Of a DNA stretch of 64,000 nt, positions 280-44,531 are shown one piece after another. Position 1 is the first letter of the stretch; each line of letters opens with the position of its first letter. The notes below the pieces were generated by a model that did not search any database, was not told where the DNA came from, and saw nothing but the letters and a program-made list of their open reading frames with translations. The position numbers and the translations under genes were made by a program. Source of the DNA: Blastocystis sp. Blastoise (taxonomy: Eukaryota; Protista; Bigyra: Opalinata); the NCBI GenBank assembly GCA_039096225.1, contig JBBPEB010000026.1, positions 841,357 through 905,356 of the forward strand, in the 5' to 3' direction.

Positions 280-3200
280 TATATATATACCTAATTCAAT
301 TTTTTGTTGATTTTCTTCTTCTTCCTTCATTTTTTGAATTTTATTTAAAGTGATTTTACCTCGTTCAAGAAGACTATCAGCATGTAACTATATATATTAT
401 TATATTATTATTAATATATATTCTAATGATAATTATAATCATATATATATATATATACAATTGGATTGACAACAATCATTTTACGAGCTTTTTCGGATAT
501 TTCAGGAACATAAGTATATTGTTTTTCTTCTTCTTTTGCCATAGCTTCTATTTTTTCTTTTCTCTTTTTCTCCCATGCTAACATTGCAGATATATGATTC
601 TATACATATATAATAATAATAATATTAAATATTAATATATAAATTAATATATATACATTCACTTCATCTTTAGAAATAATTTTCTTTTCTTCAGGAACAG
701 TGGACTATATTAATAATAAATAGAATAATGATAATATATATATATAGATATACTTCTTTCTTTTGTTCTTTCTTAGATAATTGATATAACTTATTCCAAC
801 GTGTATTCTATAACGATTAAAATAAATAAAAACACATAATAATAATAAATATAATTCACATAACAATAATAATAACAATACTAACAATAAATATAATTCA
901 CATAACAATAAATAATATACTTCATTATTTGTTGCTAATGCTTTCAATTCAGATTTTGTTAATAATCGTGGCTTTTTCTCAATAGGAGTTGATTCTTTAG
1001 GTATTTCTCGTTTAATCGGAGTAGCTAATTGTTCCATTCTCTTGGAAATAGCAAATGGATACTGATCTCCCTTCTTATAACCTTTATATAAAGCAAATTT
1101 CTTCTTCTTTTCTTCTTCTTCCATTAATTCTCTCTTCTTCTTTTCTTCTTCATGTATCTTTTGTTCCTTCATTTTCTGTTCATATCTTTCTAACATCTTT
1201 GGACCACTTGGAATTGTAACACGACCCTCACGTGGCTTAGGAATAGGAATGTCACGTGATCCATTCTCAAGTTCTAATAAATTAATAGGTTTTGTATTAC
1301 GATTCTTTTCAAGTGCTAATTTAAATGAACGAGGAGGAGGAATTAATCCTAACGCAAATATAACAGCGTTATCCGTACATGATTTATATTCTTTATGAAT
1401 AATATCATTCCATAATTCAGAATCTTCTATTTCTTTCCATTCAATAATAGATTTATTTCTCAAACCTTCTTCGATCTTCTTACTACTTTCATCTATTATA
1501 TATAAATCTTTCTCAGTTTCTATAGTATGAACTCTATATGCTTTATTTTCTATTACATAATATTTATAATGTTTCATATCTAAAATATCATTATATACTA
1601 AAGCATTCTCATGAGTAGAATGATAATTAAATTGACGACTATTCCCACGGGGAGTCATTGATTTTCCTTGACCACTTAATAATAATCCATTCTTATTCAT
1701 ATCAATTTGAATAGTAAGTTTCTTCTTATCTTTATTTATTTGTTTAGGAATAGTAGGAGTATTAAGAGGAGTAGTAGAAGTTGATTTAGGTTTATAAAGT
1801 CTATTTACTGTATCATTTATTTGTTTTTTAGATAAAGAATGAGGTGTTTTAACAGGAGAAGAAGCAGGAATAGACATACTCTTTCGTTTATTAGATACAG
1901 ATGTAGTATTCAATTTTGAAGGAATAACATGTGGTATCTTAGAAGCTTGAGAAGTCTGTTTTGATTCAGTTATTGGCGCAATAATAGTGGATGACTCAGG
2001 AACAGTATTCTCATTATTTAATTGTTCTTCAACAGCAATAGGTTGTTCTTCAATTTGTTTTTCAGCAATTATAGGTTGTTCTGGAGCTATAATTTCTTCA
2101 ACTTTAGGTTGTTCTTCAACAATAGGTTGTTCTTCAATAACAGATTGTTCTTCAGCAGCTATAGGTTTTTCTTCAACAACAGGTTGTTCTCCAACATTAA
2201 TAGGTTGTTCATCAACTATAGGTTGTTCTTCAATAACAGATTGTTCTTCAGCAGCTATAGGTTTTTCTTCAACAACAGGTTGTTCTTCAACATTAATAGG
2301 TTGTTCTTCAATAACAGGTTGTTCTTCAACATTAATAGGTTGTTCTTCAACTTTAGATTGTTCTTCAATAAGTATAGGTTCTTCAGACACATGCTGTTCT
2401 TCAACAACAGGTTGTTCTTCAACATTAATAGGTTGTTCTTCAACTTTAGATTGTTCTTCAATAAGTATAGGTTCTTCAGACACATGCTGTTCTTCAGCAG
2501 CTATAGGTTTTTCTTCAACTATAGGTTTTTCTTCAACAGCTACAGGCTTTTCAGCATCAATGGATTGTTCTTCAATTATAGGTTCTTCAACAACAACAGG
2601 TTGCTCTTCAACTATAGGTTGTTCTTCAACAGGTACAGGCTTTTCAGCATCAATGGGTTGTTCTTTAATTGGTTCTTCAACTGCAACAGGTTGTTCTTCA
2701 ACAATAGGTTGTTCTTCAACTTTAGGTTGTTCTTCAACTTTAGGTTGTTCTTCAACAACTATAGGTTCTTCAGACACATGCTGTTCTTCAGCAGCTATAG
2801 GTTGTTCTTCAACTATAGGTTGCTCTTCAACAATAGCTTCTTCAACAGGTACAGGTTTTTCAGCATCAACGGGTTGTTCTTTAATTGGTTCTTCAACAGC
2901 TACAGGTTTTTCTTCAACAGATACAATAGGTTGCTCTTCAACTGCAACAGGCTCTTCATTAATAATAGGTTGTTCAGCAGAAACTATAGGTCCTTCAACT
3001 ATTACAGGTTGTTCTTTAGCAACAGGTTCTTCATTATTAATAGGTTGCTGTTCAACTGCTACAGTTTCTTCATTATTAATAGGTTGTTCTTCAACTATTA
3101 CAGGTTCTTCAGCTATAGGTTGCTCATTAACAACAACCTGTTGTTGTTCTTCAATTGGTTCCTCATTAATAACTGATTCTTCAACAATAGGTTGCTCAGC

Positions 3201-5062
3201 AGGTTCTTCTAATTCTACTTGTTCAACAGGAATAGTCTCTTGAGAAACAATAGGTTCCTCTTCACTAGCTATAGGTTGTTCTTCAACTATAGGTTGCTCT
3301 TCAATAGTAGATTCTTCTTCAGCAATAGGTTCCTCTTCATTAGCAATAGGTTGTTCTTTATTAGCTATAGGTTGTTCTTCAACTATAGGTTGTTCTTCAA
3401 CGATAGGTTCTTCAATAGCAACAGGTTCAATAGGTTGTTCTTCAGTAGCTATAGGTTGTTCTTCATTATTAATAGGTTGTTCTTCAGTAGCTACAGGTAC
3501 TTCTTCATTAGCAATAGGTTGTTCTTCAGTAGCAATAGGCTCTTCAGTTTGAATAGATTGTTCTTCGACAGGTTCTTCAACAACAACAGGTTCTTCAACA
3601 ACAACAGGTTCAACAGGTTGTTCTTCAGTACCTACAACAGGTTGTTCTTCAACGATAGGTTCTTCAATAGCAACAGGTTCAACAGATTTTTCTTCAACGA
3701 TAGGTTCTTCAATAGCAACAGGTTCAACAGATTGTTCTTCAATATGTTCTTCAATAAGAGATTGTTCTTCGACAGGAGTAACAGGTTGTTCTTCAACGAT
3801 AGGTTCTTCAATAGCAGCAGGTTCAACAGGCTGTTCTTCAACGATAGGTTGTTCTTCTACATTAATAGGTTGTTCTTCATTAGCTATAGGCTGTTCTTCA
3901 ACTATAGGTTGCTCTTCAACAATAGGTTGTTCTTCTACATTAATAGGTTGTTCTTCTACATTAATAGGTTGCTCTTCAACAATAGCTTCTTCTTCAGTAA
4001 CAACAGGTTGTTCTTCATTAGTATAGTTGTCCATTGATTGTTCTGGTATAATTTCACTTGATTCGTCTGCTATAGGTTGTTGTTCACCAGTAGTATAATC
4101 TTCAGTATATTCAGTTTCTACAGGTTGTTCAGTAAAATTAGTATCTTCATAAGAACCATTATTATCATAGTATTCTTGATTTTCACCTTCTTGAGTATAT
4201 TCTTGATTATAATCACCTTCTTGAGTATATTCTTCTTGATTTTCACCTTCTTGAGTATATTCTTCTTGATTATATTCACCTTCTTGATTATATTCACCTT
4301 CTTGAGTATATTCTTCTTGATTTTCACCTTCTTGATTATATTCTTCTTGATTATATTCACCTTCTTGATTATAATCACCTTCTTGAGTATATTCACCTTC
4401 TTGAGTATATTCACCTTCTTGAGTATAATTTTCTTGATTATATTCACCTTCTTGATTATATTCTTCTTGATTATATTCACCTTCTTGATTATATTCACCT
4501 TCTTGAGTATATTCTTCTTGATTATAATTTTCTTGATAATCACCTTCTTGAGTATATATGGGTTGTTCTCCTTCAGTATATGATTCTACGTAAGATTCAT
4601 TGACTTCAGGATCTTGGGGTTCATAATTATAACTTTCATTTTGAACTTCTTCTGGATTTTCAGTATTTTGGTTTTCAACATTTGAATTTTCATCAACTAG
4701 ATTTTGATCACCAGAAATATCAACTACATATAAAAAAATAAAATAAGAAAAATAGTATTATAAGCAAATGAACACTATTAAAAAATAAAAAAATGTGAAG
4801 AACAATACAATAATAACGATTATGAATAGGAATAAAGAGTATGAATAATATTATATGATAAATAGCATAAATGAATATGAATAAAGAAGATTCAAAAACA
4901 AATGTATACCTTCTTGATTATAAGTATCTTCAGTAACATTGGAATCTTCATTTCTAGCTTCAACAACATCAACAGTATTCACTAAACAACGTAAAACACT
5001 ACTTAAGATGGAATACAGAATAAAATACCTGAAGATTCATTGTTATTTTCGTCATTATCCAT
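81..5062 (-). CDS. Multi-exon acidic (EEQP / QEGEY) repeat protein with a basic C-terminal region; probable microtubule/cytoskeleton-associated protein; 3' end runs off the window
   Basis: ATG at 5062 (MDNDENNNESS). GT-AG introns at ~4982-5028 and ~4724-4909. The large exon ~921-4723 is open upstream of the 705..4034 ORF. Further small exons follow toward position 81 (NTRWNKLYQLSKKEQKKE; STVPEEKKIISKDEVN; YVPEISEKARKM). Motifs such as SKRMEQLATP and VNRLYKPK resemble THEG/Mn-type microtubule-binding repeats (inference). No signal peptide seen. Confidence 0.8.
2020..4560 (-). repeat. Coding tandem repeats: EEQP(I/V)x units (~2020-4020) and QEGEY(T/N)/QEEYN units (~4170-4560)
   Basis: Directly visible GGTTGTTCTTC and CACCTTCTTGA periodicity on the + strand, with larger duplicated blocks (e.g. 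SEEPILIEEQSKVEEQPINVEEQP twice). Confidence 0.95.
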
Positions 5063-11360: not shown

Positions 11361-11624
11361 GTAAAAAACAAATTCATATACAACATAAAGATTTATTTTA
11401 TTCTATAGTAATAATAAAAACTTTTTAAATAGTATTCCTGGTTCTTTTTTATTTTTAAAGGGTAAAATTTATATATATAATATTATCTATATTATATAAT
11501 TTTATTAAACAAAAAATAAACAATTTTTCTATAATAAAAAAAAATATCTTTATAATAAAGTATAAAAAGAAAAAAATAACAAAAAATTATTTGAGAAAAA
11601 AATAACATAATATAATAATATTAA

Positions 11625-13151
11625 CACTCTTGGGAAAAACCCGATTTTTGGGAAAAAACCCGGTTTTTCCAAAAAAATGACTGAGAAAAAAAATCTTGTT
11701 TTGCTTATTATTTTGTTATTGACTAAGCTTATATTGATATATAATAATGATTTTTAATCATAAGGATGTCAGCTACCAAAGTTTAGATTCTTGTAAGTTT
11801 ACATTAAGTTTCTAAAGATTTGGCTCACAATTGTCCAACATTTTGTATGTGTATTTCAATATAATATAAACTTTGTTTTATTAAGACAATCATTATGATT
11901 ATATTTATAAGAAAATCAAGTTTAAAATCAAGAAATAAAATACCGAAAAAGGCAATTAAGCAAAACTCTGTAACTACTTATTTTGAAACACTTAAGTACG
12001 AATATCACGTAAGAAGACAAGATTAGTTACTCTGTGAATGCAATATTATAAGATATAACTTAAAGACTCTTTTAAATTATTTGCCAAAAAACACTATTTT
12101 TCTATTTTTCTTCTCAATTTTTCTTTAAAAATATTTATTTATAAATTCTTTATATATTTACAATAAATACTTGATAATGCAGAGAATTTAGATAAATAAA
12201 GTATTAATCTTAGCTATTATTGAATTTAACCATATTGCAATTTTCTTCAGAAAACAATATACAATATGTCACAAAGTCTTTTTACTTTATTATTACAAGT
12301 CTCCATGTTGTTTCATTTCTAACTAGAATTTTAAAATAGTTCAACATGTGACTGACGGTTTATTAGAGGTATTTAAAAAAGTTTTTTTGGTATATTTAAA
12401 ACAATATTTTATCTCTTTTGACAGTAATTATTTAAAATAAAATGATGTAAATATAGAATATGTTAAAGGTGATAAAACAATATATAAAAAATAAATGAAA
12501 CAAAGGTTTCTATACTTTGTGTAAATGAGAAATGTTGACATTCATAAGAAAAAACTATTTGTAAGTGGTTTACAAAATAAAATAAATATGTGTTATTTAA
12601 GTAATATACAAGTATATTATATTATAATAAACGAAATATTCTCATCTATTATGAAAACGTTTAAAATATGTCAACAACATTCAAGAACATTTCCAGTTTC
12701 TCAACTAAAAAAACATAATAATTAAATATTTCTGATATATAAGAGTGTTTTAGAGAATTGAGAAGTGAAAGAAGAAAATAAAAACATTCAACTACTTTAG
12801 GAACAATATAGACTCGAAGTCATCATTTATCGTATACTCTCTATGTATTAAATGCAATAAAACCTTTACTTATTTATTTCCCAAACACTGTGAATCATAT
12901 CTCTCACAATTACAAATGAAATTAAAGTATGTCATTTTGAAGCCATATTGTTAATTAATAATTTTAACACCGAAATGATGTATTGTATAGAACTACATTA
13001 CAAAAATAAACATATATGGCTTTTCTTATTTAGTCTTAAAGCATAAACTAGTTGAATATACTTAAAAATAGATCAAAAAAATGACTTAAAAAACGCTTTT
13101 TCTTTAAAAAAACCGGGTTTTTTCCCAAAAATCGGGTTTTCCCCAAGAGTG
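11625..13151. mobile_element. Non-autonomous CACTA-superfamily element with CACTC ends, 1527 bp
   Basis: Left end CACTCTTGGGAAAAACCCGATTTTTGGGAAAAAACCCGGTTTTT. The right end is its reverse complement with one mismatch, ending ...CCCCAAGAGTG at 13151. 3-bp TSD TAA at 11622-11624 and 13152-13154. No intact ORF inside. Confidence 0.9.
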
Positions 13152-13163
13152 TAAAATAAATAT

Positions 13164-15064: not shown

Positions 15065-15309
15065 ATTTTAATATTTCTAGAGATGAAGAAAAAACTCTCT
15101 TGGAATGAAATTATTACTCTAAGAATAATTAACCGAATTATGAAAATATTGTTTTTTTTCAATGAACTTAATTGGAATAATGAAAGAATATAGTTTTATA
15201 TAAATAGAATAATGAGAATTATTCTTCATCATTAACTATATCAGAATATTCTTTCTAAAAAGTGATATCTTCCACTAAATACACTGGTAGGCACTTTTGA
15301 GTTTTTGAA

Positions 15310-15680
15310 GGTTTTTGATTGGCTAATTTTCGTTCAAAACTTATTCAGCCAATAAAATTTGAATAAAAAAAAGACTTAGGCAAAAAAAATAAAATTTTCA
15401 CAAAATTTTTAAGTCGACTTTTGATTTAGACTCAAAGACCCTATTTGACATATTTTAACAAAGAATTGACATTAATTTTTGTTTACAGAGGGTCGCACAA
15501 TATCAAAAACGCTTTTCTTTTGTTTTAAATCGTAATTCCGACAAATAATGGGGTCAATATTTTAAAACCTCTTGTTACTCTGTTTAAAATAAAGACCCTC
15601 TCAGAGTCGCACACATGATTAAAAGTGAATAAAAAGACCTCTATGGGTCAAAACCAAAATTCAGCCAAAAAGTCAAAAAT
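15310..15680. repeat. Left subterminal region: ATTGG...CCAAT inverted pair and dispersed GAGGGTC/GACCCT and GTCGCACA motifs in both orientations
   Basis: AAAGACCCT at 15434 and 15591, CAGAGGGTCGCACA at 15486, GAGTCGCACA at 15604, AAAGACCTCT at ~15633. Confidence 0.55.
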
Positions 15681-16869
15681 TTATATTTTTTTTACACTGA
15701 AAAAATGAGCCGAGCCTATTTGTTCCATGGGCAATCAGACCAGAGTTTTCAATTTTTAAAATATTTACGGGAATATTTTTATTGTTTAAAAGTGAGTCTA
15801 TTTATATTTTATTTTATATAAGAGGACACAAGTGTTTTAAAAAAGGTTTTTCATTAAATTTTATTATGACTCAAAGTTCCGCATACAAAAAGTATGTCAA
15901 AGCTTATAGATAAAGGGTTCTTTTTCAGAATCAACTAAAAGTTTTTTTTTAAGTCATTTTTAGAGTTAATTCTTCAACGGATGGACATTTTAAGTTATAA
16001 TTAATAGTTTTTGGACGAGTTAGTCAACAGATCAGAGAGTCAACAAAAATGAGTTATTTTTTAAAGGTTAAAAGTGTGGGATGCAGTAGTATTGTATAGA
16101 TGGTGTAGTGTGAAACGTGTCATAACTTATAAATATGATAGTGAGTCATAAAAAATTAAAAAAATTAAAGAAAGGTATTTTCATGAAAAATTTTGTATTT
16201 CACTTGAACATTTGAATTTATTAGTGAATTTATAATTATTTTTATTTTATTGTCTCTAAGAGGAATTAGAGCTTCTCACAGTGTTTATGTATGTTTAGAA
16301 GACAAGAATGTATTGTGTCAGTTTTCCATTCTGTAGTCCCTCTTCCTATCAGACTGTCTCCTTGGTCAACCTCAAAAATTTAATCAACAGAGTTGCTGCT
16401 ACTTTTGTTTAACAAGATTATTTCCTTGTTCTTATTCCAACGCTTTCAAGAAACAACTTGCCATGCTATAAAAAGTATATAAATGTATTATTTGTTTTTC
16501 TATTCATTACTTTTTTTTTCAATTACTAAATATAAATATGTTTTTAATATTGGCTTATTTTAAATTGTATACAATTTATATTAATTATAATTTATATTAT
16601 ATAGAATGATAGGTTTTGTTGTCTATTCATACATCAAATTGTTAGTTAAGTCCTGTTAAAGATTAAACGGTATATAGATAGAAATTATTATTAATATTAT
16701 TATTATTATTATATATTATATTATTATTATTATTATTATTATTATTTGATTATTATTATTGTTATTATTATTATTTGATTATTTATTACGGGTATTCTTT
16801 AAAAAAATTAATAAATTACCCTAAAATTATTAATAATTTTTTTATTTTCTAAAAATATTTTATATATAG

Positions 16870-18345
16870 ATCTAAAAGAGATAGTTCTAGACTAAATAAT
16901 CTACATATAAATTCTAATAAAATAAATAAAATTGATATAAATGGATCAGCTATAAATAATATGAATAAAGATAAAAATAATAAAGAAACAGATGAATCGA
17001 ATCTCTCTCTTAAAGATAATTCTATTTCTATAAATAATAATAATATACATTCAAATAAACATCGTAAAGAATCAAATGTTTCTAATTCTTCATCTTCTTC
17101 ATCTTTATTTTCATCTCAAGATAAAAATACAAATAATTCAAAAGATATATCAAATAATAAGAATCATTCTTCTGTTAAAGGTAATAGTATTCATGATTCT
17201 TCTAAAAATATTATAAATTATATAAATTAGATGAATAATAGAAATCATAGTATTGATTATTCAAATATAAATAATATACAAGAAGAGGAAAAAGAAAGAA
17301 AAGAAGAAAGTATACCAGAAGAAAAAGAACAAAAAGAAGAAAAAATAGAAAAACATAAAGAAAAAGAGACAAGAGAAGAAAGAAAAGAAGAAGATGATGA
17401 TGAAGAAGAAGAAGAAATAAAAGAAAGAGAAGAAGAAGAAGAAAAAGAAGATAATGATAATGATGATGATACTACAAGTATAATAACAGATACCGATAGA
17501 GTATCTAATCCTATTATTCGTGGCCGTGGTCGTGGACGTGGTAAATTACGATCTCATGGTAGAGGAAGAGGAAGAGGAAGAGGAAGAGGTTCATTCTATC
17601 ATTATGACGATAGTGATAATCAAAGTGAAAATGAAAATGATGAAACATTTGAAATAGATAATGATAAAAATGATAAAAAAGAAAATTATCATTCTATTTC
17701 ACGTCATAATTATGATTCTACTTATAATATAGATGGAAATGATTTAGATAAATATAAACGTAAAGGTATAAATATGAAATTAAAAAAGAATAAACGTCGT
17801 AATAATGATGATGATAGTTCTGATGATTATGTGAAACATAGAAGGAATAGTATTTCTAAAGAATCTTTAAAAAGAAAATCAAGTATTAAAAGTGATTATT
17901 CTTCAATAAGTAAATCTAAAGATGATAGTATAAAGAGTTCTACTATAAATAATTCTATAAAGAATAATTCTATTCATATTAATAAACCATTATCTTCAAT
18001 AGATGGTAAAACATTATTAGATTTAGAAGGATCTGCTCATAAAAATTCACGGTTATTTGAAGAATATCATTCTATGGATATATCAAATGAAACTAATAAT
18101 AATAATACTAATGGTAATTAAATATTAATAATAATAAAGATAATAATAAAGATAATCATAAAGATAATCATAAGTATAATAATAATAATAGTAATATTAT
18201 TATTATTATTAATAATAATATTACGACAGCAACAACAACAACAACTACTACTACTACTAATATAGAGAATATTCCTAATAATACTCCTTATAAAGAAATA
18301 TGGCATATTGGTCAAATAATAAGAACATATAATAAAGATGAGAGT
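16870..18345 (+). pseudogene. Disrupted low-complexity 5' part of the captured chromatin gene (N/S-rich, acidic, RG-repeat)
   Basis: In-frame TAG at 17228-17230 and a frameshift near 18119-18123. The frame resumes and runs into ATG 18346. Possible further degenerate exons at ~16336-16670. Confidence 0.7.
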
Positions 18346-21300
18346 ATGACAAATATTGATAAACAGAATATTATACAGATATATGATTTAATTGATAATA
18401 AATTATGTCAAATTCCTATAAATAATGTTACTATATTTACTTCAAAACGTGAACATTTATCTGTTTATTATACATTATCTGTAGAAAATACAGAACATAT
18501 AAATGAAGAATTAGAATTAGTACCTAAAATTATTCAGAAAAGTCAAGAACCATTTAGTAGTATATCTGAAAAATTAATCAGAAGTAATAAAGAATGGTTA
18601 TATACATCTATTTATATATATATTTATATAAATAAATATCCATTTGGAGATTGGGAAAAAGGTTATGTCACGTGCTTTAATGCAAATACAGGTAAACATT
18701 ATGTCAAGTTTTATAAAGAAGAAATAAAAAGTGGTTGGTATTTATTAAATGATAGAGATGTTATTCGATGGAAAACTATTTATAAGTATATATATTATGA
18801 TATTTATTTATTATAAACTTTATATAATATATTATAATATATATATATTTTTAATAATATTTTTTTTATTATTTGATTATAATTTATTTTTTAAAACTAT
18901 TTTATTTATTATTCATATAATTAGTTCTCATTATATATATATGATTTAATTTTTTTTTATTATTTATCAATATACTATATATATATATAGTTTATTAACA
19001 TCATCTTCTCCATTAACTCAATATCATTCACAAGAATTAATAAAAATATTACCTCAAGATTCTACTTATTGTATATGTTGTTTATCAAATATATCAACAT
19101 TAACAAATCCATTATTACAATGTTCAAAATGTAATTTATATATACATTTAGAATGTGATCCTGATTCAAAACATAATTATAATGAAGAAAAACATAAATA
19201 TTATTGTTTTTGTTGTAGAGTTTGTAATGGATGTAATTTATATATAACAAAACATAATATATGGAATTATATAGTAATAAATGAAAAGCAAATAATATGT
19301 TGTGATAAATGTTTATTATTATATAATACCAATCATTATTGTAGTATATGTCGTAAAACATATATAAATACAAAAGATATGTTATTATGCCAAGAATGTG
19401 GTATGTATATACATGAATCATGTGAAAGTAAATGTGTAAGAAGATATATGAATAAAGAACGTGAAAATAGACATCATCATCAGCAAGAAGAAGAAGATAC
19501 TATAATAGAAGGAGAAATAGAAGGAGAAGGAGAAATAGAAGATAAAGATGGAAATGATACTTTATCTATAAGAACTGGTAATAGTAAAAAAGAAAATAGT
19601 ATATCAACTTCAAAGAGTTTTTATGATAATTATTTATGTAGTCGTTGTAGAAGAAAGAAAATGATAGATTTACATAAAGAATTATTAAGAATTGATATAA
19701 AACATTTATTTACAAAACAAGTTGAAGAGAATTTTGCACCTGATTATTATAAAGTAATATCAAAATCAAATGCTATGTGTTTAGATATAATGAATGAAAA
19801 GATAAAACAAAAAGAATATGCATCAATACAATTATTTTATAATGATTTTGAATTAATATGTTTAAATAGTTATAAATATAATAATCCTGAAGATAATATT
19901 TGGAATGCAACTGATGATTTTTATAAAGAAGGAAAACAAATATTTATACAATTATGTCATAATATTACTTCTGGTATATATGAAAAAGAAATAATAAATA
20001 TCCAAAATAAACGTTTAGAACAAATAAATGGTCCATCAGCATCTTTAACTGCACAAACAAATTCACATATAGCTAGTGAACGTCAACATCAATTAGAAAA
20101 AGTAAAAGATGAAATAGGAAAATTAGCACCTAAAACATTATTACCTTATATAGAACCATTAGATATAACTAAAGTAAGTATACAAGATAAATATAAAAGT
20201 ATATTATGTAGAGATATGTGTATAATATGTGGTAGTACAGGTGATATAGATAAAATGTTATTTTGTATTGATTGTGGTGAATGTTATCATGCTAATTGTT
20301 TAGTACCCCGTATTGTTATTAATGATTTATTAAGAACAACTTGGAGATGTAAATATTGTTGTATTTGTGAGCATTGTGGATTAAATATTCATACACAAAG
20401 TAATAATACTATACCTAATATTAATAATAATCATAATATTGAAGATATGAATGATAATAATCATAATGTGAATAATAATAATAATAATGTGAATAATAAT
20501 AATATACATATATATCCTTCAGAAATGAATAAATCAATATCAAATCATTATAAATCATCATCATTACAATCTTCTTCTTCAACACCTTTATCTTCACCTT
20601 CTAATCATTCTATAAATAATAATAATAATACTAATAATACTAATAATAATACAATATTATTAGAAGATCAAGATATTATTAGTTGTGATTATTGTAAGAA
20701 AACATATCATATGAAATGTTTAAATCCACCATTATTACAATTACCTAAAGATACATGGTATTGTTATACATGCTATCATTGTAATCAATGTCATCAACAA
20801 AATTTACCGTTTTCTTATTCAATTAAACGTAATTATTGTACTAATTGTGCTTTAAATGAACCATTATTTAAAATATGTCCTATATGTAATAAAGAATGGA
20901 ATGAAAATGATCAAAATATGTATTTATGTGAAAAATGTGAAAGATGGGTTCATAAATCATGTACTGAATTATCTTCTGAAGATATGTTTAAATTAGAATT
21001 TTATAATAAAAATTATATATGTAAAAATTGTTTACATAATAATAATAATAATAATATTAATACTAATATGATTAATACTAATAATACTATAGATATCAAT
21101 ATGAATACAATGAATAATATAAATCTGTCATCAAATTATATACAAAATTCTATAATAAATAGAAATAACAATAATATGAATACAAATAATATTTATTCTA
21201 ATACATCTATTCTATCAACACCATCTCTTTCTTCTTCTTATCCAATGAATACTATTATTAGTAATACTGATATTAGTAATAATAGTAATTATAATACTGA

Positions 21301-23010
21301 TGCTAATAATAATAATACTAATATTGATAATAGTAATGTTAATACTAATAATAATATGAATGATAGTAATAGTAATACTAATAATACTATGAATGGAATA
21401 TCATTAAATTCAAAAGCTTCAATGATATCCACAAATCTATTTGATCAACCAATAAATTCTCCATATCTTTCTATATTAGCAAATCATAATTCACCAACTA
21501 TATCTCAACCTATATCTACTACTCTATATACATCACCTACTACTTCACCTTATCCATTATCACCTTATATATATCAACAACCTGTGTCATTTACTATACC
21601 TGATAATGATACAAAAGATATGGATAGTACATTAAGAACATGTATTAAAAGTATACAAGGATATAGAAGTATGGTATTAGAAAAAGAAAATAATTTTAAA
21701 TCAAAAGATGAATTTATTAAAAATTTATTAAATAGTCGTGTTTATGAAATGGCTCAAATTATTTTAAAGGTATATATATATATAATATTAATATTATTAT
21801 TTATTGTTTTAAATAATTATTTTATAATATTATTCTATTTATAATTATATTTTATTATTATTTTAAATAATAAATATAATAAATATAATAAATATAATAA
21901 ATATAATAAATATAATAATAATATATTATTCTATAGGCAAATTCTATACTATTATATATAACTTCATTATCTGTACCTCAATCTATAATTGATGAAAAAA
22001 TACAAGAAAGAATATCTACGTTTAAAAATAAATATTTAGCTCAACAATTGTATTTTCGAGCTCAACGTTATATAGCATCTAAATTAGCATATAGTTCAAT
22101 TCATTTTACTTCAGGACCTTCTCCTTCTACTATAATGAATATACCAGAAATATGTAATAATTTACCTCATATTGATGTAAAATCTTATATTAATACTCCT
22201 TATCCTCTAGTTGATTCTGATTTAATTACTTCTCTTTCAGATTATTATAATTATGATCTTATTTCTTTGTATAGTGATACTATATCTGCTTCTTCTTTTC
22301 TTTGGGCTATTTATAATATATTTCCTATTTATTTTGATCCAAAAGAACCATTTTCAAAATTTCATTTATTATTAATATCTACACCATTAGTTCATTTACA
22401 TTATCTTCAAAAACAACATATTGGTAATCAAAATGATTTAGAAGATTTAAAACATAAATTAATAGAATCATTAACAAATCCTAATATAACTATGTTGCCA
22501 GATCCATCTATATGTACAAAACAATTTTCTTATAATGATTTATCTACACCTTTTTTATCATTTTCTTTTTATAATAATAATAATATAAATATAGATAATA
22601 ATAATTTATCAGAAAAAGATAATGTTAGTCAAGAAGAAAAAATGGATATAAAAGAAAAAGAAGATGATAAAGATAATATAAATGATAAAGATAATATAAA
22701 TGATAATAAAGATGAAAATGATAATAATAATAATAACGAAATAGAAGCTTCTGATAAAAAGGAGGAAGAAGTAAAAGTGGAAGAAAATACTATTTATACT
22801 ATTTATACTAATAATAATGAAATTAATAAAGAGTCAACAAATATAAGTATAGAAGAAACTCAAGTGATGAATAAGACGAATGAATTTATCTCTACACTGC
22901 TACTACTTATGTTACTACTATCACTATTACTACTGATATATCTTATATCTAATACTATATATGCTTATGGGATAGTCCATCTATATTTAATATCAATGAG
23001 AGTATTATAA
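18346..23010 (+). CDS. Captured Tudor-like + PHD x2 + bromodomain + PHD x3 chromatin-reader protein (KMT2/MLL-like reader module, no SET domain seen), ~1430 aa spliced
   Basis: Exons 18346-18785, 18991-21769 and 21937-23010 join in frame (4293 nt). Tudor/Agenet-like PFGDWEKGYVTCFNANTGKHYVKF. C4HC3 PHD fingers (e.g. CIICGSTG..MLFCIDCGECYHANCL..WRCKYC; CDYCKKTYHMKCLNPPL..WYC; CPIC..CEKCERWVHKSC..YICKNC). Bromodomain APDYYKVI..MCLDIM..YASIQLFYNDFELICLNSYKYN. The last ~40 aa look frameshifted. Confidence 0.8.
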
Positions 23011-24150
23011 CCGTAGTAAAAGAAGATAAAAATGATAAATAACATAAATCTAAAAAACATAAACTAGTATTATGACACAGATAAATCCGCTGAAATCACT
23101 AATTAATAAGATATTTCTTATAATAATAAATTTTCTAAATAATCTGATAATATACTATATATATTAATGATACTTCTATAAATATTTGTGATAAAGAACA
23201 GATGTATATATTAGTATAGATATAGCTATTAGGAAAACTTTATTTATTTTTCTTCCAAATGTATTCAGTGATGCTGGTGTAAAATTAACTATGATAACAA
23301 TGATAATAATAATAATACTAGTAATCATGCAATTACTACAGATCTAAATATTGCAACGAATAATATTAATCTTCTATTCATAAAAAGTTTTAACATAAAT
23401 GAAAAAGAAACATATAAAAACAAAAAGAATCAAAATAAATTGATGTTCAGATATCTTTGGATATACTTCAAATAATTCTCCTATTATAATATTATTTATA
23501 CAGCTCTTAATACTGAAATACAAATAGATACTTATTATTATTCTAAAACTATATCTACAAACTAAAAATGAATCGAAAAGAAAAAAATTATTGTCTTCAA
23601 TCCTCATTGAAATCAAATTTGAGAGAAGATAATAATCATCTTCTTTCTATACTATTAATTACTTTTACTCCTATGACTTCTTCAAGTTAATCTAAAACTC
23701 CTTCTATTCCTCCTCCTTCAGTAAAACTTACAAAAATAAATTATAGAGCTTCTATTCCTTCTCCTATGCATAGAATACATTATCAACAAGAATACATCCA
23801 TCACAGTGGCTATTACTCACCACAACAAGATACAAGAATAAGACCTTCTTCTGATTCTATATAACAATATAAATCTAATAATACACGATATATTGAATAA
23901 TATCATAATAATCGTCAATATACATATGATAAACGAAATTATAATGAGAACCATTGAGAGATCTTTAAATATATCATTCTCAATGTGAAATCATTTCCAA
24001 GAAAACCGCTATTTATGATTATTTTATTGATGACACATAATATCCTCTTCGTTATCATTCTTCTTATCTTCATGATTCTAATATAGATTATTATCCTGTA
24101 GTAAACATTTCGGTAGATCCTTAAACAGAAAATATTGATACATATCTATC
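23011..24150 (+). pseudogene. Decayed 3' continuation of the captured chromatin gene
   Basis: Coding-like low-complexity composition (S/T/N/K-rich) with many stops and frameshifts. Confidence 0.5.
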
Positions 24151-24681
24151 TTTAATTTAACTTTACTAGCATATATTTAGTACTCAATATAGCTTTATTA
24201 TGATAACTATTTTATTCAATATACCTAATTTTAAATTATTATTCTCAAATGTATTACTAGCTTTATATGTCATTAAATATACTCTACTAACTTTCCTTTC
24301 TTTCTACTTCCGGAACACATTCTGTATACATTTCATATTTTGTATATCTTTGTCGGATATCTTATTTTTTTCTGCTAATGGAATACTTCATATTATTTAG
24401 ATTTCTTATAAATTAAGAAATATTTCTTAATGTTTATATTATGTTTAAAATGAAGTAATTAATAGAAATAGATCTATGATACAATCATCTAATATAATAA
24501 AAGATGCTATCTACATACTTTAAGTTTTGTATTAAATGTCTTTTAACAAAACGTTAATGTTTATATACTTATTAATATTAAAAAAATATATATTATTCAA
24601 ACACAATATAATATAAAATTAAAAACAAAATTAATAATATTCATATATAGAAGATTATATTTATTTATAAAATTGATATAT

Positions 24682-27600
24682 CTAGGTAATATGGCGTGTC
24701 ATAAACACTGTATTTGTAACAACGATTTCAGAACTAACTACATTTTTATTCTTCTGTTTTACCTTCTTGGCCTATATATATAATTATAAACTGATACAAA
24801 AACAGATTAAATGAATATACTTGTTTTTCTTCATATGAATCATCAATATTCTTATGAATATCATCATGAACGTCTACAATAATAAGATTATCTGGTTCAA
24901 TACATGTTACTGGTATAAAAGATGAATACTCATTGTCCTTTGGTATAATTCTATTTGAATCTTCTACAATATAATACAAACCTGTTGAAGAAATATGACA
25001 CTCAGGATATTCATGTTTCTTTATCAGAATAGATGATCCTATTTGGATATAATATAATGCCTTAATTAGGTGTACTATATCTTTCTTCTCATTATCATTT
25101 GTTAAATACATTATATAAGAATTATCAATTGTTTCTATTCCTTCATCTATATCAGAAGAATTAAATATTATAGAATCATTTATCATTATCTCAGAATAGA
25201 ATGCTATTACTACATTTTTTAGATTATTAACTAATACTCGATATATATCAGGATCATTAATACTACTATTTATATTTGCTATTTTACTAGAATTTATATC
25301 TTTCCATAATACTTCTTTAATATGATTGTCATTTGATAACAGAAGAAGCTTTATTATTTCTTTTATATCTGATTGAGATAAATTAATAGAATCAATTCCT
25401 CTAATACCTTTTATGAGTTTAATACGTTCATTGTTTGTATGAACTTCTTTGAAACATTCAGTTAACTCATTCTGAAATGATTCATCCTCATTTAATTCAA
25501 TCCCAACTTCATCATATGTTTCTTTATTTCCTTCTAAACTTAGATTAGAATTACTACTATCAATATTTTTATTATTAATATGTATATCTGCTATTTCTCT
25601 TTCAATAATGCATCTCATACAGGATTCATTATATTGCTTTCTTCCAAAAGTTATTCTTTTTAGATAAGAGTAAAATCGTTCTGATTCGTATGTGGAAGCA
25701 TATATAATTGATCCAGCGTTAATAATAGTCTCTGGAAGATGCTTCAGATAATGAATCTGAGTATTTATCAACTCCTTTGGGAGTAATAACTCGAAAAGGA
25801 AACATATTATATTACATTGATTTTTAAATACCTCCAGATTCTGAGGAGAAGAATTACCTTTAAAACAATATATCTGACGAATGATTGTTGCTAATGGATC
25901 TATTAGTATAACAAGAGGAGAATCTGTGTAATAGAAATCTGCAGTAATAAGAGGTAAGATACAGGAGGTAAAGAATATTCTGGAATGTGAAGACATCCTC
26001 CAGAACTTCTTTTCATTCATGATATATCTAAACTCATATTCATGGTTATTATATAATGTATTTACTGCAGATACTCTAGTAGTAATAATAGACATATTTT
26101 CTTTATCAAAACATAGTTTTTCAATTAATGATTCACTAGGATCTATTCCTTCTTTTGATATCTTTGAGTAATTATCTTTTGCATTATAATGAAACAGAAG
26201 ACATAGAAGAAGAGTACAAACATTATTAAACAAATGCATAGGGTCAAGAATAAAACTTGTAGCTGAATCGAAATAGGTTAATGATTCAAAAACACTAGGA
26301 ACTTGTTTTATTCCATTAGTAGATCCACTCTCTCCATTACTGTATCTATTAAGCAATATAGAAGAATTTGTTCTTTGTAAATAAGATATTTTAGTCAAAG
26401 CATCATTATATATATAACTAGAAGGAATTGATTTTGTAAGAATTTGGATACTACTATTATTACTGTCATTGGGTTGATTAGTATTATAGGTATTATTATC
26501 TTGAGACGAATTTAGAGAACATGAAGGATACAAGATTCTCTTAATACTTTTATTATTAGTATCAACAGTAATATAATTTTCAATACTTTGATATGTACAT
26601 TTTATTCCTTGGTGGAATTCTGATGTACTTCGATTCCAATTAAGCTCACAATATCTGCATGGGAATGAAGATGAAGATCCAGAGAAACCACCAATAGTAG
26701 AAACTGCTGCACAATCACCAAAAACATTTAGTAATACTCCAACCACTTTTTTCTTTATAATCCTATTATCTATATATATATCCATTTCTATTCCAGATGA
26801 TAGTATAGAAAATTCTTTTATTAATAAAGTTAGAATGGTATTAGAATATGATTCCTTTGTTACTGAATAAACCCAGAAAGAACGATTATCTGATATTCTA
26901 TTATAATTATAATTCAATAACTTGAGAAGAATAGGAAAAGAAGATTGATTAATCTGTGATAATGGATTTGTAAAAACACTTATTCCATCACATGTCATAT
27001 CAAATGTCAAAAATATATCCCCATTATTTATGACCTTACTCATATACTGTCGATAATTCTTACCTGACATATAGGCTGGTAACTTGCTTGGCAAAGATTC
27101 TACAGGCATAGAAAGATATTGAATTATTTGTTCTTTAGAATAGTATGATATTTCATTTATAAACTTCTTAGAAGATAGGAATTTACGAATTCGTGGTATA
27201 AGAGGAATAATTGATGTTTTAATTCCTATATATTTGAATAGTTATATTGAATATAATGTATATTATGTATAAACAATAATAATAATAATGGAAATATTGA
27301 GAATGAAATTGAGATATATATAATATAATAAGAATGAATGATATAGACTCTACATATACTAATATTCAAATTATTAATATTTAAAAATAGTGTATATTAT
27401 TGTCTATAATAAGAATTATATTCTATTCTAATAAAATAGTATATATGAAGAAGTATATCAAATTTATATATTCAATAATAATATATATATACTAAAAATA
27501 ATATGGATTAAGGATAAATATATTAAAAATAATAAATTGAATAATATAATAAAATAATGAATTGGAATATTATATAAATATAAAGAAATACGTTAATCCT

Positions 27601-28527
27601 ATATAGCAAACAATATATTGAAATATTAGATTAAGAATAATAGAAAGGAATGTTTCAAATAATATTACTATAATATACTAACAATAATAATTATTGAAAT
27701 AATATATATAATAATGATATATCTAATGATAATTGAATTGTATATCGAACAATATATCAAAAAATTATAATAAGAATACTATAATGGTATTATATACTAA
27801 TATTAATATACAAAAAACATATATAAAGATAGTATATATATAATGACTATATGTATATATATATACCTGTATTTGGTCCACATTCTTCATTACTACATTG
27901 TATCTTTTCCTGCTCTAATAGATTTCTTCCTCCATTAAATCCTAGTAACTTAGTACAGTTTCTGCAAATATATAGATTTTTGTGAATTGGTATCTCATTA
28001 TTGGAAGAACAATACTTTCGAACTATGTCTTGGCCACTCTTCGGAATATATAGCAATTCATGTTGTGGTGCTACTAATTTGATTATATTATTTGCTAACT
28101 CGTAAAGTTGTTTTATGTGTTCTTTACTTATCCTAAGTTCACACCAACAAATATATATAAAATCATCAAGTGTTGATGTTTTATTTTCGTCTTCTTTGAA
28201 TATTTTATTCTACAATAATATATATGCATTATTATAAATAGGATTAATGATTATATCCATTATAAAACATATTTAAATAATATATATATACGCAATTCAC
28301 TACATTATCTAAAAATGCATCCATTATTGATACTTCTTCTTGAGAACTAGTGTTATCACCTTGAAATGAGTCTTCACAATATTGTAATGTATCCTCATAA
28401 TCATTTGTCATAGTAGGAAGTTCATCATCAATTGAGATACCTATGTATACATATGTATATAAGTAGTAGAATCATTACGATTCCTTTTTGGTTGAAAACC
28501 AGGAATATCAAAAAGTCGTGTACCCAT
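24682..28527 (-). CDS. CACTA/EnSpm DDE transposase (TnpD-like; Transposase_21/DUF4218-type), 5 exons, ~1000 aa, apparently intact
   Basis: Exons 28527-~28479, ~28440-28292, 28189-27867, 27225-24821 and 24771-24682 splice in frame. Motifs: CRNC..C..C zinc knuckle, IPLIPRIRKFL, FDMTCDGISVF, FGDCAAVSTIGG..FPCRYC, LDPMHLF, QIHYLKHLPETIINAGSIIYASTYESERFYSYLK. Confidence 0.92.
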
Positions 28528-29236
28528 TTTAGAAATAGAATAAAGAAAAATAATGTTTAGAAAAATTTAGATTTTTATATTAATAATTTGAATTAATTAT
28601 CTCAAATTTCATTTTATTTAGGTTTTACTTAACATAATATGCTTGTTGAATGTATATCGAATTGTTAAGGGTATCAATATTATAAAAATATATGATCGAA
28701 TTACTCATTATATTATACATACGTCTAATAAAAGTAAAACATTGTGTATACCAAAAGAGAATTTGTTTCAAATGCTTTTAAATATAATTAATTCAATAAA
28801 TTTTTTAGTCCTTCTTAATTTAATAATTTCTACTATATATACTTTTTGATTCGAAGTGTGATATCTAATATATATCAAAATTCTTTATTTATTTCAGCTT
28901 TTAGAATGCTATTGTTTAAAGAATAAAATATCATTCTAAACAAATTTTGTTTAATTTTTTTTTCTATATCTTTTTATATTGTGATAATAAACGATTTAAC
29001 CATTATATTTATTGTTTATTTATGAAGTATTAGCAAACAAATTGCAATTATAAATTATTTTACAGATCATGCAACAACTAACTACATAAAAAGATAGAAC
29101 ATTGTTTTAAAAACATAATATGACGAGACCTTATATTGTTTAATATAATAAATAATTTCACTTTTTTTTTTTGAGACTTTTAAAAACAATAATAAACCCT
29201 AATATGAAATTCTTATAAAAATTCTTTCGTTTTAAT

Positions 29237-30120
29237 ATGTTAACAAAACATGACCAAAAAGCATTTTTTATTCATTTTTATGATCTTTATCTCCCTAATT
29301 ATAGGTCTAAGTTGACTGAAAAGGAAATGAAAAAACTAAAACAATTCAAAATTGAAATGTTGGGATCTTTTCATGAATTTTATAGATCTCTCATCTCTCC
29401 TGACACATCCGGTATATTCTATATGATATTTATAATCATTTTAGGGAAAAAAGAATGTAAATATCTTACATACGATATAGAGACTTTTCTGAGAAAAGAA
29501 GCTCTTTTGAGACATATCAAAGTAATAGCCATAAAAGATACAACAAAACAAATAAAAGTATAACCTGTTCTCTAATTAATGTCTCATTTTATATTTTTTT
29601 AATTAAATAATCTTTATAGAAGTGTTTACGACTAATTCCATATATCTTAAAAGATTCAGAATTAATAAAAGCAAAATATATTTTAAAAAAAGAGAAAGAT
29701 CATGTGTGCGTTGACGAAAATAATTCATTATATAATCTTATTCTTTTAGTCATAAAAGACTACATGTCTCTCCATAAGAGAGTTAAGTCAATAAATGACT
29801 ATGACATCATACGATGTATAAAAAAAGCGTTCTATGATAAAAGACAAAAAGGTAACTTCGCTAGTTCTTTTGGTTTTGTTGTTGTTGATAAAGATGGATA
29901 CAAAATAACTGAAAAAGCAAGTCTTATAGATGAACCTTTAGTATATATTTTAACTATTTATACTGTCAATATATATAATTCTTTTAGAATTCTGAATGGA
30001 AAAGAGATTCTTCTCTTTTTACTACTACCAGTCATTCATTTATGAATAATAAGAAAATTATTGAAAATCTTCAAATCAGCTATGACAGAGTCATAGAACA
30101 CAATCAGCGTCATCAGTATA
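29237..30120 (+). CDS. Second transposon-borne gene of unknown function (possible TnpA-like accessory); 3' end uncertain, may extend to ~30650
   Basis: Four exons splice in frame (MLTKHDQK...SPDTS|GKKECK...KQIK|KCLRLIP...IDEPL|NSEWKRD...HNQRH) with canonical short introns. Divergent from the transposase across ~710 bp. Confidence 0.65.
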
Positions 30121-30920
30121 TTTATTTTATTGGTTTATTATATATTATTGTTTCTTATTTTTTAGAATATTTTTTACTTCCAGTTTTATTGGTAATATTT
30201 TATTTTTTGGATATAATACATTTTTTATTCTCTTTCTTCATTATAAAGTATAGTTATCATTGTATTTATATATATGTTTTATATATAGGATGTAATAAAC
30301 CTTGGGTTGCTATCTATTGTTGCCATTTTTTCTGGTATATTATTTTATATTGTTTCCAATCTTTATATTATTTCTATATATTATTGTCTTTATATACTAT
30401 TACTAATTATATATAGGAATGCTTAATAAATCATTGTCAATAATAGTATATATATATATATTTTAACATTATCATTATATATTTATATAGATCAAATATA
30501 ATTAATTATAATAAAGAACAATGAATTGTATGTTTTATTTCTATATAATATTCTATTTTTTATTTTTATAGATAAACCAAAAATTGCAATTTGTACTGTC
30601 GAAATATAGATTAATATTTTTCTTTAATTCTTATGTATTTATATAATTATTTTTATCTATTATTTATACTCTATAGGTCATTGGTATTATAATATTTCAA
30701 AACAAATAATAAAAACAAATATTTATTCTTTTTATATTTGATTTTTTTTTGTTATAATATTAATTAATTATTTTTATACATATTTAAACTAATTGCTTTG
30801 TTTACACTTTTAAAAAATATTAAAAAAACAATATAAATACATTTCTATTATTATAATCGAAATATAAAATGTTTAAAAGTCTATTATAATGATTAAATAT
30901 CTTGTTATTTCAAGCAAAAT

Positions 30921-31077
30921 TATTGGCCAATTATTGCAATTCTAGTGGTTAAATTTTTAAAATGATCCAATTATAATATATAAAGATACTAACAAGAAAT
31001 TTCTAGATTTTTTCAATCAAAACTATTGGACAATTAATGCAATTGTAGTGGATAAAAGCTTGAAATTATCCAATTAT
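30921..31077 (+). repeat. Right subterminal direct repeat, two ~54-bp copies, 103-bp offset
   Basis: TATTGGCCAATTATTGCAATTCTAGTGG...ATCCAATTAT (30921) versus TATTGGACAATTAATGCAATTGTAGTGG...ATCCAATTAT (31024). Confidence 0.75.
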
Positions 31078-31302
31078 CTTATTATAATAATATTGCATCT
31101 ATAAGTGTAACTGGCTGAAAAAGTCTTAAATTTTTTTGCTTACTTTTTCGAATTTGTCGTTTTTTTGATATCCGTGAAAATGCCTACCAGTGGTATGTTA
31201 GTGAGTAGAATTTATTTTCTTAATTTGGTTTATTCATCTCTATCACTTATGATTTTATAAATAAAATATGAAAATCAATACAATATAGTCATTTTGTCTC
31301 AA

Positions 31303-39236: not shown

Positions 39237-39328
39237 ATGGTGAAAGAGAAGGTAGAATTTGATGCGAATAAGATGGTTGATATTCAGAAGGATGTAATTC
39301 ATTTTGAAAGACTGATTGGTGATTTAAT
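39237..39328 (+). pseudogene. Orphaned 5' end of the TLDc gene (MVKEKVEFDANKMVDIQKDVIHFERLIGDL), cut by the Pack-CACTA insertion
   Basis: Joining 39328 to 46403 (removing the element and one AAT) reads ...GAT TTA ATT GGT ATT TTA AGC AAG..., in frame with the 46452 ORF. Confidence 0.85.
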
Positions 39329-40423
39329 CACTATGAGGCAGGGTGGCCTATTTAAGAGTTTTGATTGGTTAATTTTAAAAATAGTCCAATAATTTTTCTT
39401 TAAAAAATTGACCTTCTAAAAAAGTGGTTTAGAGAAGGAATTTTTCTGAAAAACAAAAAAAAATAATTCTAAGTCGCTATTATTTTTCTATTTTTCTATA
39501 TTCTTCTCATATAGAGTTAATATGAGGTTTTTGACATTATATTCAATCAATAGGGTCTTTATTTGACAAACAGAGCTGCTTTTTATGTTTGTTTTCTTAA
39601 CATTAGTGGTTTGGAAATGTTGACTTATTTTCAATAAAAAATTGCTAAACGGTGTTCAATAGACCATGTAGACTCATAATATAAATGAAAAAACTTGTTT
39701 TATGATGTTTATAAAAAAAGTCAAAAACAAAAATTCAGACAGTCAAATTTTGTAATACACGGTAATTTTTTTCATTTCAAAAGAAAAAGAAAAATTTGAA
39801 AGTGGGTCTTTTGTTTTCTTTTTTTGTTGAACTTGATGTATGAATATGTATTTTGTTTTAATATATCATTTTTTATTTAGTGAGGATGTTCGTGTTTCAA
39901 ATTTGTTGTATTTTATATATTTTATTTTAGTTAATTCATTTCTTATTTTAGGTATCAGGTCTTTTAAAGATGAGACAACTCTGTCCATCGTGAAATTGGG
40001 TTCTGTGTTTTCCTAGGTGGTTCAACTGGATCAAAAATACTTTCTGTATATAATTATATTTTTTAATTAGCATTATTTATTTAATCTATCTTTATTTTAT
40101 AGTATAGAATGATTGCTGGTGATCAAAAGTGTTTATTTATTTATTATCTGTCAGTCTAGTAAGTATTTATATTAATTAGATTGTAATTACTTATTTTTTC
40201 TATTATATATATTTTTTAAATTTATTTTTTTATTAATTTATTATATTAATCGCTATCTTATTATTTCTACATTTTTAAATATAATTTTTATTCTATTTTT
40301 ACGATAATAAATTATATATATATAGACATACGAGTTAATACTTTCATTGAGTGAAGAACTTGTTTATCTTTTAATTTATTTTTTGTAGTGTTTATTATAT
40401 ATCAAAATATAGATGAGTATATA

Positions 40424-40684
<261 letters not shown>

Positions 40685-42308
40685 GATTATCTGTTCTTTT
40701 ACATATAAATTAAATAGATAGCTGGATTTGATTATAAATCTATATTTTCCCGTGGGAAGAAAGATAATTTCTGGTCGATGGGTGATGGTGTCGGTTCATG
40801 TGGTCAGTGTACTGAAAAAATTTATGCACATGTATATAGATATAGATAAATATAATAATAATATGAATCATAATTATTGATGATATTTTTATACTATTTA
40901 TATATATATAGGACACTGATTGATATATATATGATGATCTTCTCGAAGTATGGAATATTGTATTCATGGAATACGAGCAGAAGGAGTATATATATATATA
41001 TATAATTATATTTAATGATATTTGTATATTATAGTATATATATACAATATAATGAATAATTCTATATTTAATTTTATAATTATATATATTATATCTCTCC
41101 TTTTATCTTAGTCTTCCCTCGTTCCTCTGACACACTACTACTTCGACACACGAATGGTTCAGAACGTATGGCCAGTGTTGTATATATATATATATAATTC
41201 ATTACAGATATACTAATAATATACTATATATATATAGCTTCAAGGCGTATGTTCAAATTTTGATACAGATGTTTTCTATTCAATGAAAGATAATTTACTT
41301 GTATATATATGTATGTATATATTTTTTCTTAATTATATATAATATATATATATATTATAATATAAACTATATACAGTTAATTCGGTAACCCTATATAAAA
41401 ACTGATAAAAAGCACGTGCTCAATTTGAAAAGTTCCCGCCAAGCACTTCCCGCGTAAACCTATCACCGTATACTACGTTGCTTAATATTCTTTCAGACCA
41501 TTTCAGACAGTTTCAGCACTTATATATCTAGGTATATATCCATCGCCTACCGGTCGCGGATGTATACTAAGAAAACTAATTAGGTATATATATGTATATA
41601 TAATTGTTATTCATAAATACAATAAGGACAATCATATATAATTCTATATATATAGACGTTGTTTAAAATATGAGTATATATACAATATTCAATTCCCTTT
41701 CTTGTCTTCTTGTATTCCCGCGGTTATTCAATCTTTAGGTTTATATATATATATATATATATATATAATAGAACTGTTTTATCCTGATATTTCAAGTCAC
41801 GTGCAGGACATAACGTCAATTGTGGAGAATGAGGAAATGTATTTTTGGCGGGCATTTGAGTGCGGTAAAGATAAACTTGAAGACATAGTAAAATCATCAA
41901 AAGTATATACTTGTGTTGATTTATTTATTTTTAATTTTATTATTGTTATGCTTATTTGTATTATAAAGAATTGTATTTGTTATTATTATATATTATATAT
42001 TATATATGTATATATATATATATAGAAACGATCTATTCCCCCATCTCTCGTGGATTTGAACCAATTATATGGAAGTACAGGAATTTCATTGGATCTCTCT
42101 CTTGTATTATTGGAAGAATGTGGAATTGTGTTACAGAACACAAATATACCTGAGGATGAAATAGACCAATCAAAAAACAAAGATAATAAATCTAAAAGAA
42201 CAGTATTTATCATATATTTATTAGTTATATGTATATTTATTTATAGAATATAGGTTTAGATAGTTATGCTATTCCCGCACTTTCTGTTCTTTCCGCGCTT
42301 CACAATTC

Positions 42309-42355
<47 letters not shown>

Positions 42356-42857: not shown

Positions 42858-42950
<93 letters not shown>

Positions 42951-43376: not shown

Positions 43377-43452
<76 letters not shown>

Positions 43453-43700: not shown

Positions 43701-43765
<65 letters not shown>

Positions 43766-44206: not shown

Positions 44207-44531
<325 letters not shown>

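Follow-up and report, generated by a model that had tools for sequence, protein, structure and literature searches.

Does a DNA transposon keep a chromatin-reader module of its host in working order, or does it carry that module as a passenger? The question is raised by a 64-kb stretch of DNA (hereafter the window) from Blastocystis sp. Blastoise, isolate Rus-B from tortoise gut (genome 33.3 Mb). The window is an AT-rich subtelomere terminating in TTAGGG repeats, and it contains a CACTA-like transposon that carries an internal fragment of a KMT2/MLL-like histone methyltransferase gene. An earlier reading of the window (the original prediction) had noticed an open core with PHD fingers and a bromodomain between decayed flanks, and had proposed that the element kept this core as a reader module. 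Our analysis favors, with a probability of about 0.65, a different reading: the cargo is a passenger whose sequence is renewed by gene conversion, with the native alleles of a diploid as the source. All positions are those of the window, and "window copy" denotes the element copy at 15282-31192. C2, C8, C15, C16, C26 and similar names are contigs of the same genome, also used for the element copies that they bear. Domain searches were run on single exons, and exons were joined locally for frame checks only.

A KMT2/MLL-like fragment inside a CACTA-like element

Exons 18346-18785, 18991-21769 and 21937-23010, joined through GT..AG introns, give a frame of 4293 nt (1430 amino acids, aa) with one terminal stop, as originally predicted. 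The last ~40 codons (from ~22890) are off the native frame, and the homologous open core ends there. Pfam detects PHD fingers (E 6.5e-23, four stretches) and a bromodomain (5.2e-13) in the core, which confirms this part of the predicted domain list. Five PHD-type Cys/His clusters are present, two of them interrupted by low-complexity inserts. The predicted Tudor domain is unsupported: the core has no Pfam match to Tudor at E<=0.1, and the resemblance is at the motif level. The core has no Pfam match to SET, and the absence of this domain had been correctly noted.

The donor of the cargo is a single locus on C26 with no transposase adjoining it, one frame of at least 4390 aa and canonical introns. 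Pfam matches to zf-HC5HC2H (3e-9), FYRN (2e-12) and SET (7e-19) were found in this gene, and the best PDB matches of its SET domain are KMT2A, KMT2B and KMT2D. There is no Pfam match to FYRC in the donor, where the region is split over exons. The C26 gene is the native KMT2/MLL-like H3K4 methyltransferase gene. Finding this donor excludes the possibility that the window holds the sole native gene with assembly errors in its flanks. The captured piece contains neither the N-terminal exons nor, at the C terminus, the ePHD, the FYRN/FYRC region, SET or post-SET. Homology between cargo and donor stops ~3.4 kb (genomic) upstream of SET; the cargo is SET-less simply because the C-terminal exons lie beyond the end of the captured piece. 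We note that members of a TLDc-like multigene family lie directly downstream of the native gene and at 46452-47800 of the window.

Both flanks of the core are damaged, but not entirely as first described. The TAG at 17228 is present as reported. The frame does change near ~18120, but the cause is not a simple frameshift: compared with the native gene, a net 2545 nt are deleted at this junction, and a split PHD and a linker block are lost with them. A Tudor-like segment in this deleted block obtained a predicted local distance difference test (pLDDT) score of 41 with a single-sequence model, and has no significant alignment to the Tudor-like segment of the core. The 3′ part is riddled with lesions as stated, but it is mostly not the flank of the same gene. 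It is the relic of a second host gene (67-75% nt and 44-54% aa identity to its donor on C16). Two ways around the 5′ lesions were rejected. Stop-codon readthrough or an altered code at 17228 is contradicted by the native allele, which has TAT there. Mini-introns removing this stop have candidate lengths of 44 and 50 nt and are out of frame. A candidate GT..AG mini-intron at 18114 (26, 38 or 50 nt) would restore the frame across the deletion, but its signals are atypical.

The cargo is borne by a transposon, as predicted; the element has terminal inverted repeats (TIRs) and a transposase. TIRs of 16-17 bp (CACTG..CAGTG) are found in the window copy, C2 and C8. Among these three copies, C8 has a 4-bp target-site duplication (TSD), AATT, C2 has one with 3/4 matching positions, and the window copy has no matching TSD. 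The transposase differs by 0-6 nt among copies and is intact in all four. Its candidate residues, assigned by pattern, are D260, D351, C370xxC, H672xxxH and E694/696, and its DUF4218 match (E 1e-4) is below the cut-off. CMC/CMCT elements are defined by 5′-CA..TG-3′ termini with TIRs, a DDE transposase whose C(2)C and H(3-4)H motifs lie after the second D and before the E, and a 2-5-bp TSD (PMC12730594). The termini of our element agree with this definition, and the transposase motifs agree by pattern. For strict EnSpm/CACTA (CACTA/G termini, 3-bp TSD), the termini fit and the best TSD is 4 bp. We take the 4-bp TSD to be a Chapaev-like trait.

The element family has dozens of further members. 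Cargo in other copies had been anticipated, and four copies do carry the KMT2 fragment: the window copy, C2, C8 and C15, and no others. The cargo open reading frame (ORF) is absent from ~40 other transposase loci. Several further features of these copies are worth recording. On its left side the window copy is like C2, on its right side like C8/C15, and it may be a recombinant. Its flanks (15273-15281 and 31193-31203) form an imperfect outer CACTA..TAGTG inverted repeat without TSD. The C8 copy contains, at window-equivalent 28909, a non-autonomous Helitron: a 2.7-kb insertion into an A/T target, with 5′-TC and CTAG-3′ ends and a hairpin near its 3′ end. The C15 copy contains, at window-equivalent 30597, a nested relative of ~14 kb, which has a CACTA end and encodes a transposase of its own, with introns.

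Mosaic copies and the selection test

The four copies are broken in different ways. In the window copy and in C2, the core is open and the lesions are the 5′ stop and the deletion. C8 and C15 retain the deleted block and have a stop and a +1 insertion in the core (Table 1), the latter being a G outside a homopolymer. C15 also has an open 5′ exon of 1453 aa. The description of an open core between decayed flanks is thus valid for the window copy and C2, but not for C8 and C15. Identity of the cargo is nevertheless ~99% in all four copies. C8 and C15 show zero substitutions in the compared regions and have different insertion sites; the core was thus already dead at the most recent duplication. 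Open copies may help the dead ones in trans.

The copies are mosaics, with tracts in common with the native gene. C2 has the native allele across 22035-22679, where the window copy, C8 and C15 share another allele. C8/C15 are native at ~30 sites within 16902-17872, and the 5′ edge at 16871-17400 is near native in them. Allele sharing occurs in all three pairings of copies and requires at least 9 recombination events. The synonymous patterns fit a two-allele pool with ~30 silent sites, in which each copy has the unseen allele about half the time (uniformity p=0.13).

We compared synonymous and non-synonymous changes in the core. The window core differs from the native gene by 17.5 synonymous and 4.5 non-synonymous differences, and the ratio of non-synonymous to synonymous proportions (pN/pS) is 0.06. 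The corresponding ratio is 0.12 for C2, 0.11 for C8/C15 and 0.15 for the block deleted in the window copy. The original prediction had looked to the dN/dS ratio (non-synonymous to synonymous substitution rates) of the core against its parent. The ratio is indeed far below 1, but it does not discriminate selection from conversion, because conversion from selected native alleles yields the same signal. The edges of the fragment are 6-21% diverged, versus 2% at synonymous sites in the core. At the 3′ edge pS is 0.24, versus 0.024 in the core (p=4e-4); at the 5′ edge pN is 0.059 with a ratio of 1.3. As pS at the edge is ~10 times that of the core, the core was overwritten after the capture. The counts reject a model in which the core was copied once and then decayed neutrally (p 1e-7 to 1e-11). 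Among copies, non-synonymous divergence of the core is 0.23-0.36%, versus 0.32-0.45% in the non-coding background to its right (p 0.2-1.0), and synonymous divergence is 1.0-2.3%, an excess with p of 2e-4, 0.04 and 7e-7. There is no deficit of amino-acid change relative to this right-hand non-coding yardstick, only a surplus of silent change. Such a surplus is expected if variants are imported, because they have already been filtered at the host locus. The proposal that selection kept the reader module is therefore weakened: the core is dead in two of four copies, it was overwritten, and its non-synonymous divergence equals the non-coding background.

These observations suggest the following course of events. 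Long ago, a transposase-encoding element captured an internal, intron-containing 8.7-kb piece of the KMT2/MLL-like gene, beside the relic of another host gene that is older still. The edges of the fragment decayed neutrally. The interior was replaced repeatedly, tract by tract, probably through ectopic gene conversion in which the native locus and sister copies took part. If the two donor alleles differ mainly at synonymous sites, the copies would receive differences biased toward synonymous sites, and the frame would stay open with no selection acting on the element. Random lesions then accrue in each copy: the 5′ stop and deletion in the window copy and C2, the core stop and frameshift in C8/C15. 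Cargo unrelated to chromatin is consistent with such a passenger, namely the C16 relic and the multi-copy AlaRS-like cargo of a neighboring element. A diploid signal has been reported for all isolates, and a strong one for Rus-B (PMC12129017).

Several points weigh against this reading. We infer the second native allele, which requires ~4% synonymous heterozygosity. The neutral yardstick is not uniform: at the element's left end the copies diverge by 3-4.6%, which we attribute to exchange with other family members; if this divergence is the true age, the core is constrained. Private changes are still synonymous-rich compared with neutrality (9:10, p 0.004-0.03). None of the folded PHD and bromodomains of the window copy carries an amino-acid change. 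Finally, four other leader-bearing loci have a PHD finger 1.1-1.6 kb downstream (see below). We also note that read polishing of near-identical repeats could add to the mosaic.

The leader and the alternatives

Upstream of the cargo, the element has leader exons whose last donor (16670) is modeled, from GT..AG signals, as spliced to the captured host acceptor at 16869. Leader introns of 47 and 34 nt (sites 16320 and 16416) are found in C2/C8 and are precisely absent from the window copy. This precise loss is either cDNA-mediated in a DNA transposon or a polishing artifact. As a separate observation, C15 lacks the 34-nt leader intron only, though it is otherwise like C8, and match lengths suggest the same for C23 and C18. 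The leader and the intron loss suggest that a spliced transcript may enter the cargo. In the modeled window transcript, the core ATG comes after 1764 nt that hold 41 upstream ATGs and an upstream ORF of 296 aa. With so many upstream ATGs, translation of the core would need an internal start or another splice. The most translatable frame belongs to C15 (5 upstream ATGs), and it encodes the 5′ exon rather than the core.

Unlikely, though the best placed of the alternatives, is a selected writer-less reader: the window copy and C2 would express a ~1430-aa PHD-bromo protein that binds H3K4me/acetyl chromatin. Following a recent replacement of the whole core, it would help the family in trans (by anti-silencing, competition with KMT2 or target choice), and C8/C15 would be cheaters. 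The low pN/pS of the window copy and C2 and the rejection of neutral decay after a snapshot are consistent with this, as are the unchanged folded domains of the window copy. The leader exons have intact splice signals and have lost introns precisely, both of which suggest that transcription runs toward the cargo. In addition, leader and PHD co-occur at four other loci, versus 0.05 expected if independent. These loci appear to form one sister subfamily that probably goes back to one capture, which counts against this reading. Two of the four copies, the youngest pair C8/C15, also have a dead core, and the upstream ATGs stand against translation of the core. The synonymous bias is just as strong in the dead copies (0.11) and the deleted block (0.15), and no fusion to a transposase or DNA-binding domain would confer element specificity. 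A combined version is slightly less probable still: an expressed writer-less multi-PHD/bromo reader, refreshed by conversion and selected in some copies, plus an independent capture of another PHD finger by the sister subfamily behind the same spliced leader, so that one element family would have recruited histone readers more than once. Apart from these loci, four PHD matches with identical scores (C18:753255, C5:483379, C19:224833 and C23:201714) suggest another repeated PHD unit.

We consider improbable an effect at the RNA or homology level, in which near-identity to an essential chromatin gene shields the element from silencing, or antisense or small RNAs made from the cargo modulate KMT2. 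Selection would then act on nucleotide identity, not on the open frame, and the transposase is transcribed toward the cargo. This would suit the high identity of all four copies with frames broken at different places, and there are precedents in the TART-A/nxf2 and aub/piwi captures (PMC7785250, PMC13534243) and in plant donor-gene conflict (PMC13317346). However, the gain from silencing an activating H3K4 writer is not obvious, and conversion alone accounts for the identity.

Least probable is an assembly effect, in which the five near-identical copies were polished with short reads in a diploid assembly that had been collapsed, so that alleles were mixed, lesions were removed or introduced, and the mosaic with its open core resulted. 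The assembly was made with Flye, racon, Polypolish and POLCA, reads that map to several places can make repeats more alike, and C8 and C15 show zero substitutions, but every lesion discussed is common to two separately assembled contigs, the +1 G is outside a homopolymer, private variants remain in each copy, and long deletions and old edges are not products of polishing.

Surroundings and comparison with known systems

The features discussed are listed in Table 1. Elsewhere in the window, an element of 1.5 kb at 11621-13155 has 57-bp TIRs and lacks a long ORF, and a long acidic tandem-repeat protein (18-nt unit, ~75 copies) is encoded at 705-4583 on the minus strand. A second cargo element at 39237-46452 has a similar spliced leader and a multi-exon cargo labeled AlaRS-like, with four other genomic copies (85-93%).

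Table 1. Coordinates of features in the window and at related loci
Feature	Position	Strand	Remark
CACTA-like (CMC/CMCT clade) DNA transposon, 15.9 kb	15282..31192	.	Homology to C2, C8 and C15 copies bounded by TIRs; flanks differ
Left TIR	15282..15298	+	Starts CACTG
Element leader exons, no long ORF	16252..16669	+	Intron 16475-16604; GT..AG signals, predicted splicing
Captured internal KMT2/MLL-like fragment, introns retained	16826..22990	+	Native locus C26 ~409.8-418.6 kb
Old 5′ edge in window copy and C2, neutrally diverged	16871..17400	+	26 non-synonymous, 4 synonymous changes; TAG at 17228
Net 2545-nt deletion junction between AAT-rich repeats	18086..18245	+	Shifts frame; common to C2
Core exon part 1	18346..18785	+	Includes putative Tudor-like segment ~18600-18785; no Pfam support for Tudor
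Core exon 2	18991..21769	+	C8/C15: stop at 18992, +1 insertion at 21002
PHD	19070-19216	+	
Cys knuckle	19223-19321	+	
Split PHD	19340-19648	+	
Bromodomain	19676-19906	+	Asn of YN motif kept
PHD	20219-20359	+	
Split PHD	20366-20773	+	
PHD	20876-21031	+	
Core exon 3, up to departure from native frame	21937..22890	+	
Old 3′ edge of KMT2 fragment	22716..22990	+	79% identity to native; pS 0.24, pN 0.17; same in all four copies
Decayed relic of second, unrelated low-complexity host gene	22981..24145	+	Stops and frameshifts; donor C16:1194823-1196072
Transposase, intact, multi-exon, 1011 aa as annotated	24682..28527	-	Main exon 24746-27109; CxxC and HxxxH motifs, weak DUF4218 match
Second element ORF, head-to-head with transposase	29237..30045	+	Similar ORF at same place in relative nested in C15 copy (judged by eye)
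Right TIR	31177..31192	-	Terminates CAGTG
Degenerate subtelomeric repeats, then ~1.5 kb TTAGGG telomere	61500-64000		
PHD matches 1.1-1.6 kb downstream of leader homologues	C17:100773, C28:280542, C25:303067, C4:1819980		Same strand as leader

The annotated "extra" PHD/bromo genes in the Blastoise genome are cargo. An essential chromatin gene of Blastocystis exchanges sequence with four mobile copies, and lesions could flow back to the host gene. If expression and selection on the element side proved true, this would be a rare DNA transposon co-opting a histone-reader module.

The native donor resembles KMT2/MLL/Trithorax proteins (PMC6647185) in its multiple PHDs, bromodomain, ePHD, FYRN and C-terminal SET. 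It differs in that the bromodomain lies between PHD clusters and keeps the Asn of its YN motif, and no CXXC was seen in it. The cargo differs further by having no ePHD, FYRN/FYRC or SET.

Other elements carry chromatin-related genes in different ways. VANC of VANDAL elements is encoded by an element-family gene and binds DNA motifs of the element (PMC5735166). The likeness would lie in the proposed role only, as an element-borne chromatin factor. In contrast to VANC, the cargo of the window copy is a fragment of a host gene with 99% identity to it, two of the four copies are broken and nothing points to DNA specificity; its ORF is not conserved across the family, being absent from the ~40 other transposase loci. 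TET/JBP genes carried by CMCT and other fungal DNA transposons encode a complete enzyme, are diverged from host genes and are conserved across families (PMC12730594). They share with our case a CMCT-type element with a chromatin-related passenger gene, but the cargo here is a recent non-catalytic fragment in one subfamily. The captures of nxf2 by TART-A and of aub/piwi in Drosophila involve retrotransposons and piRNA against silencing genes (PMC7785250, PMC13534243). In both settings, a fragment of a host gene-regulation gene is present in an element at high identity; here, however, the element is a DNA element, the gene encodes an activating writer, and a putative RNA role would be by analogy only.

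A further likeness is to Pack-CACTA and Pack-MULE elements, which carry intron-retaining fragments of unlinked host genes, mostly pseudogenised and some under apparent purifying selection (PMC13317346; PMC5861414). Our element is likewise a TIR DNA element with intron-containing host fragments, whose donors are elsewhere (C26 and C16). It differs in having its own intact transposase in all four copies, and is thus not non-autonomous. It also differs in the 8.7-kb length of the fragment, the stramenopile host and the interior refreshed by exchange with the donor. If the cargo is a passenger, it offers a clean, testable case in which the copying of donor alleles into transposon cargo can bring dN/dS far below 1 with no selection acting on the element, and this bears on how purifying selection in Pack-elements is interpreted.

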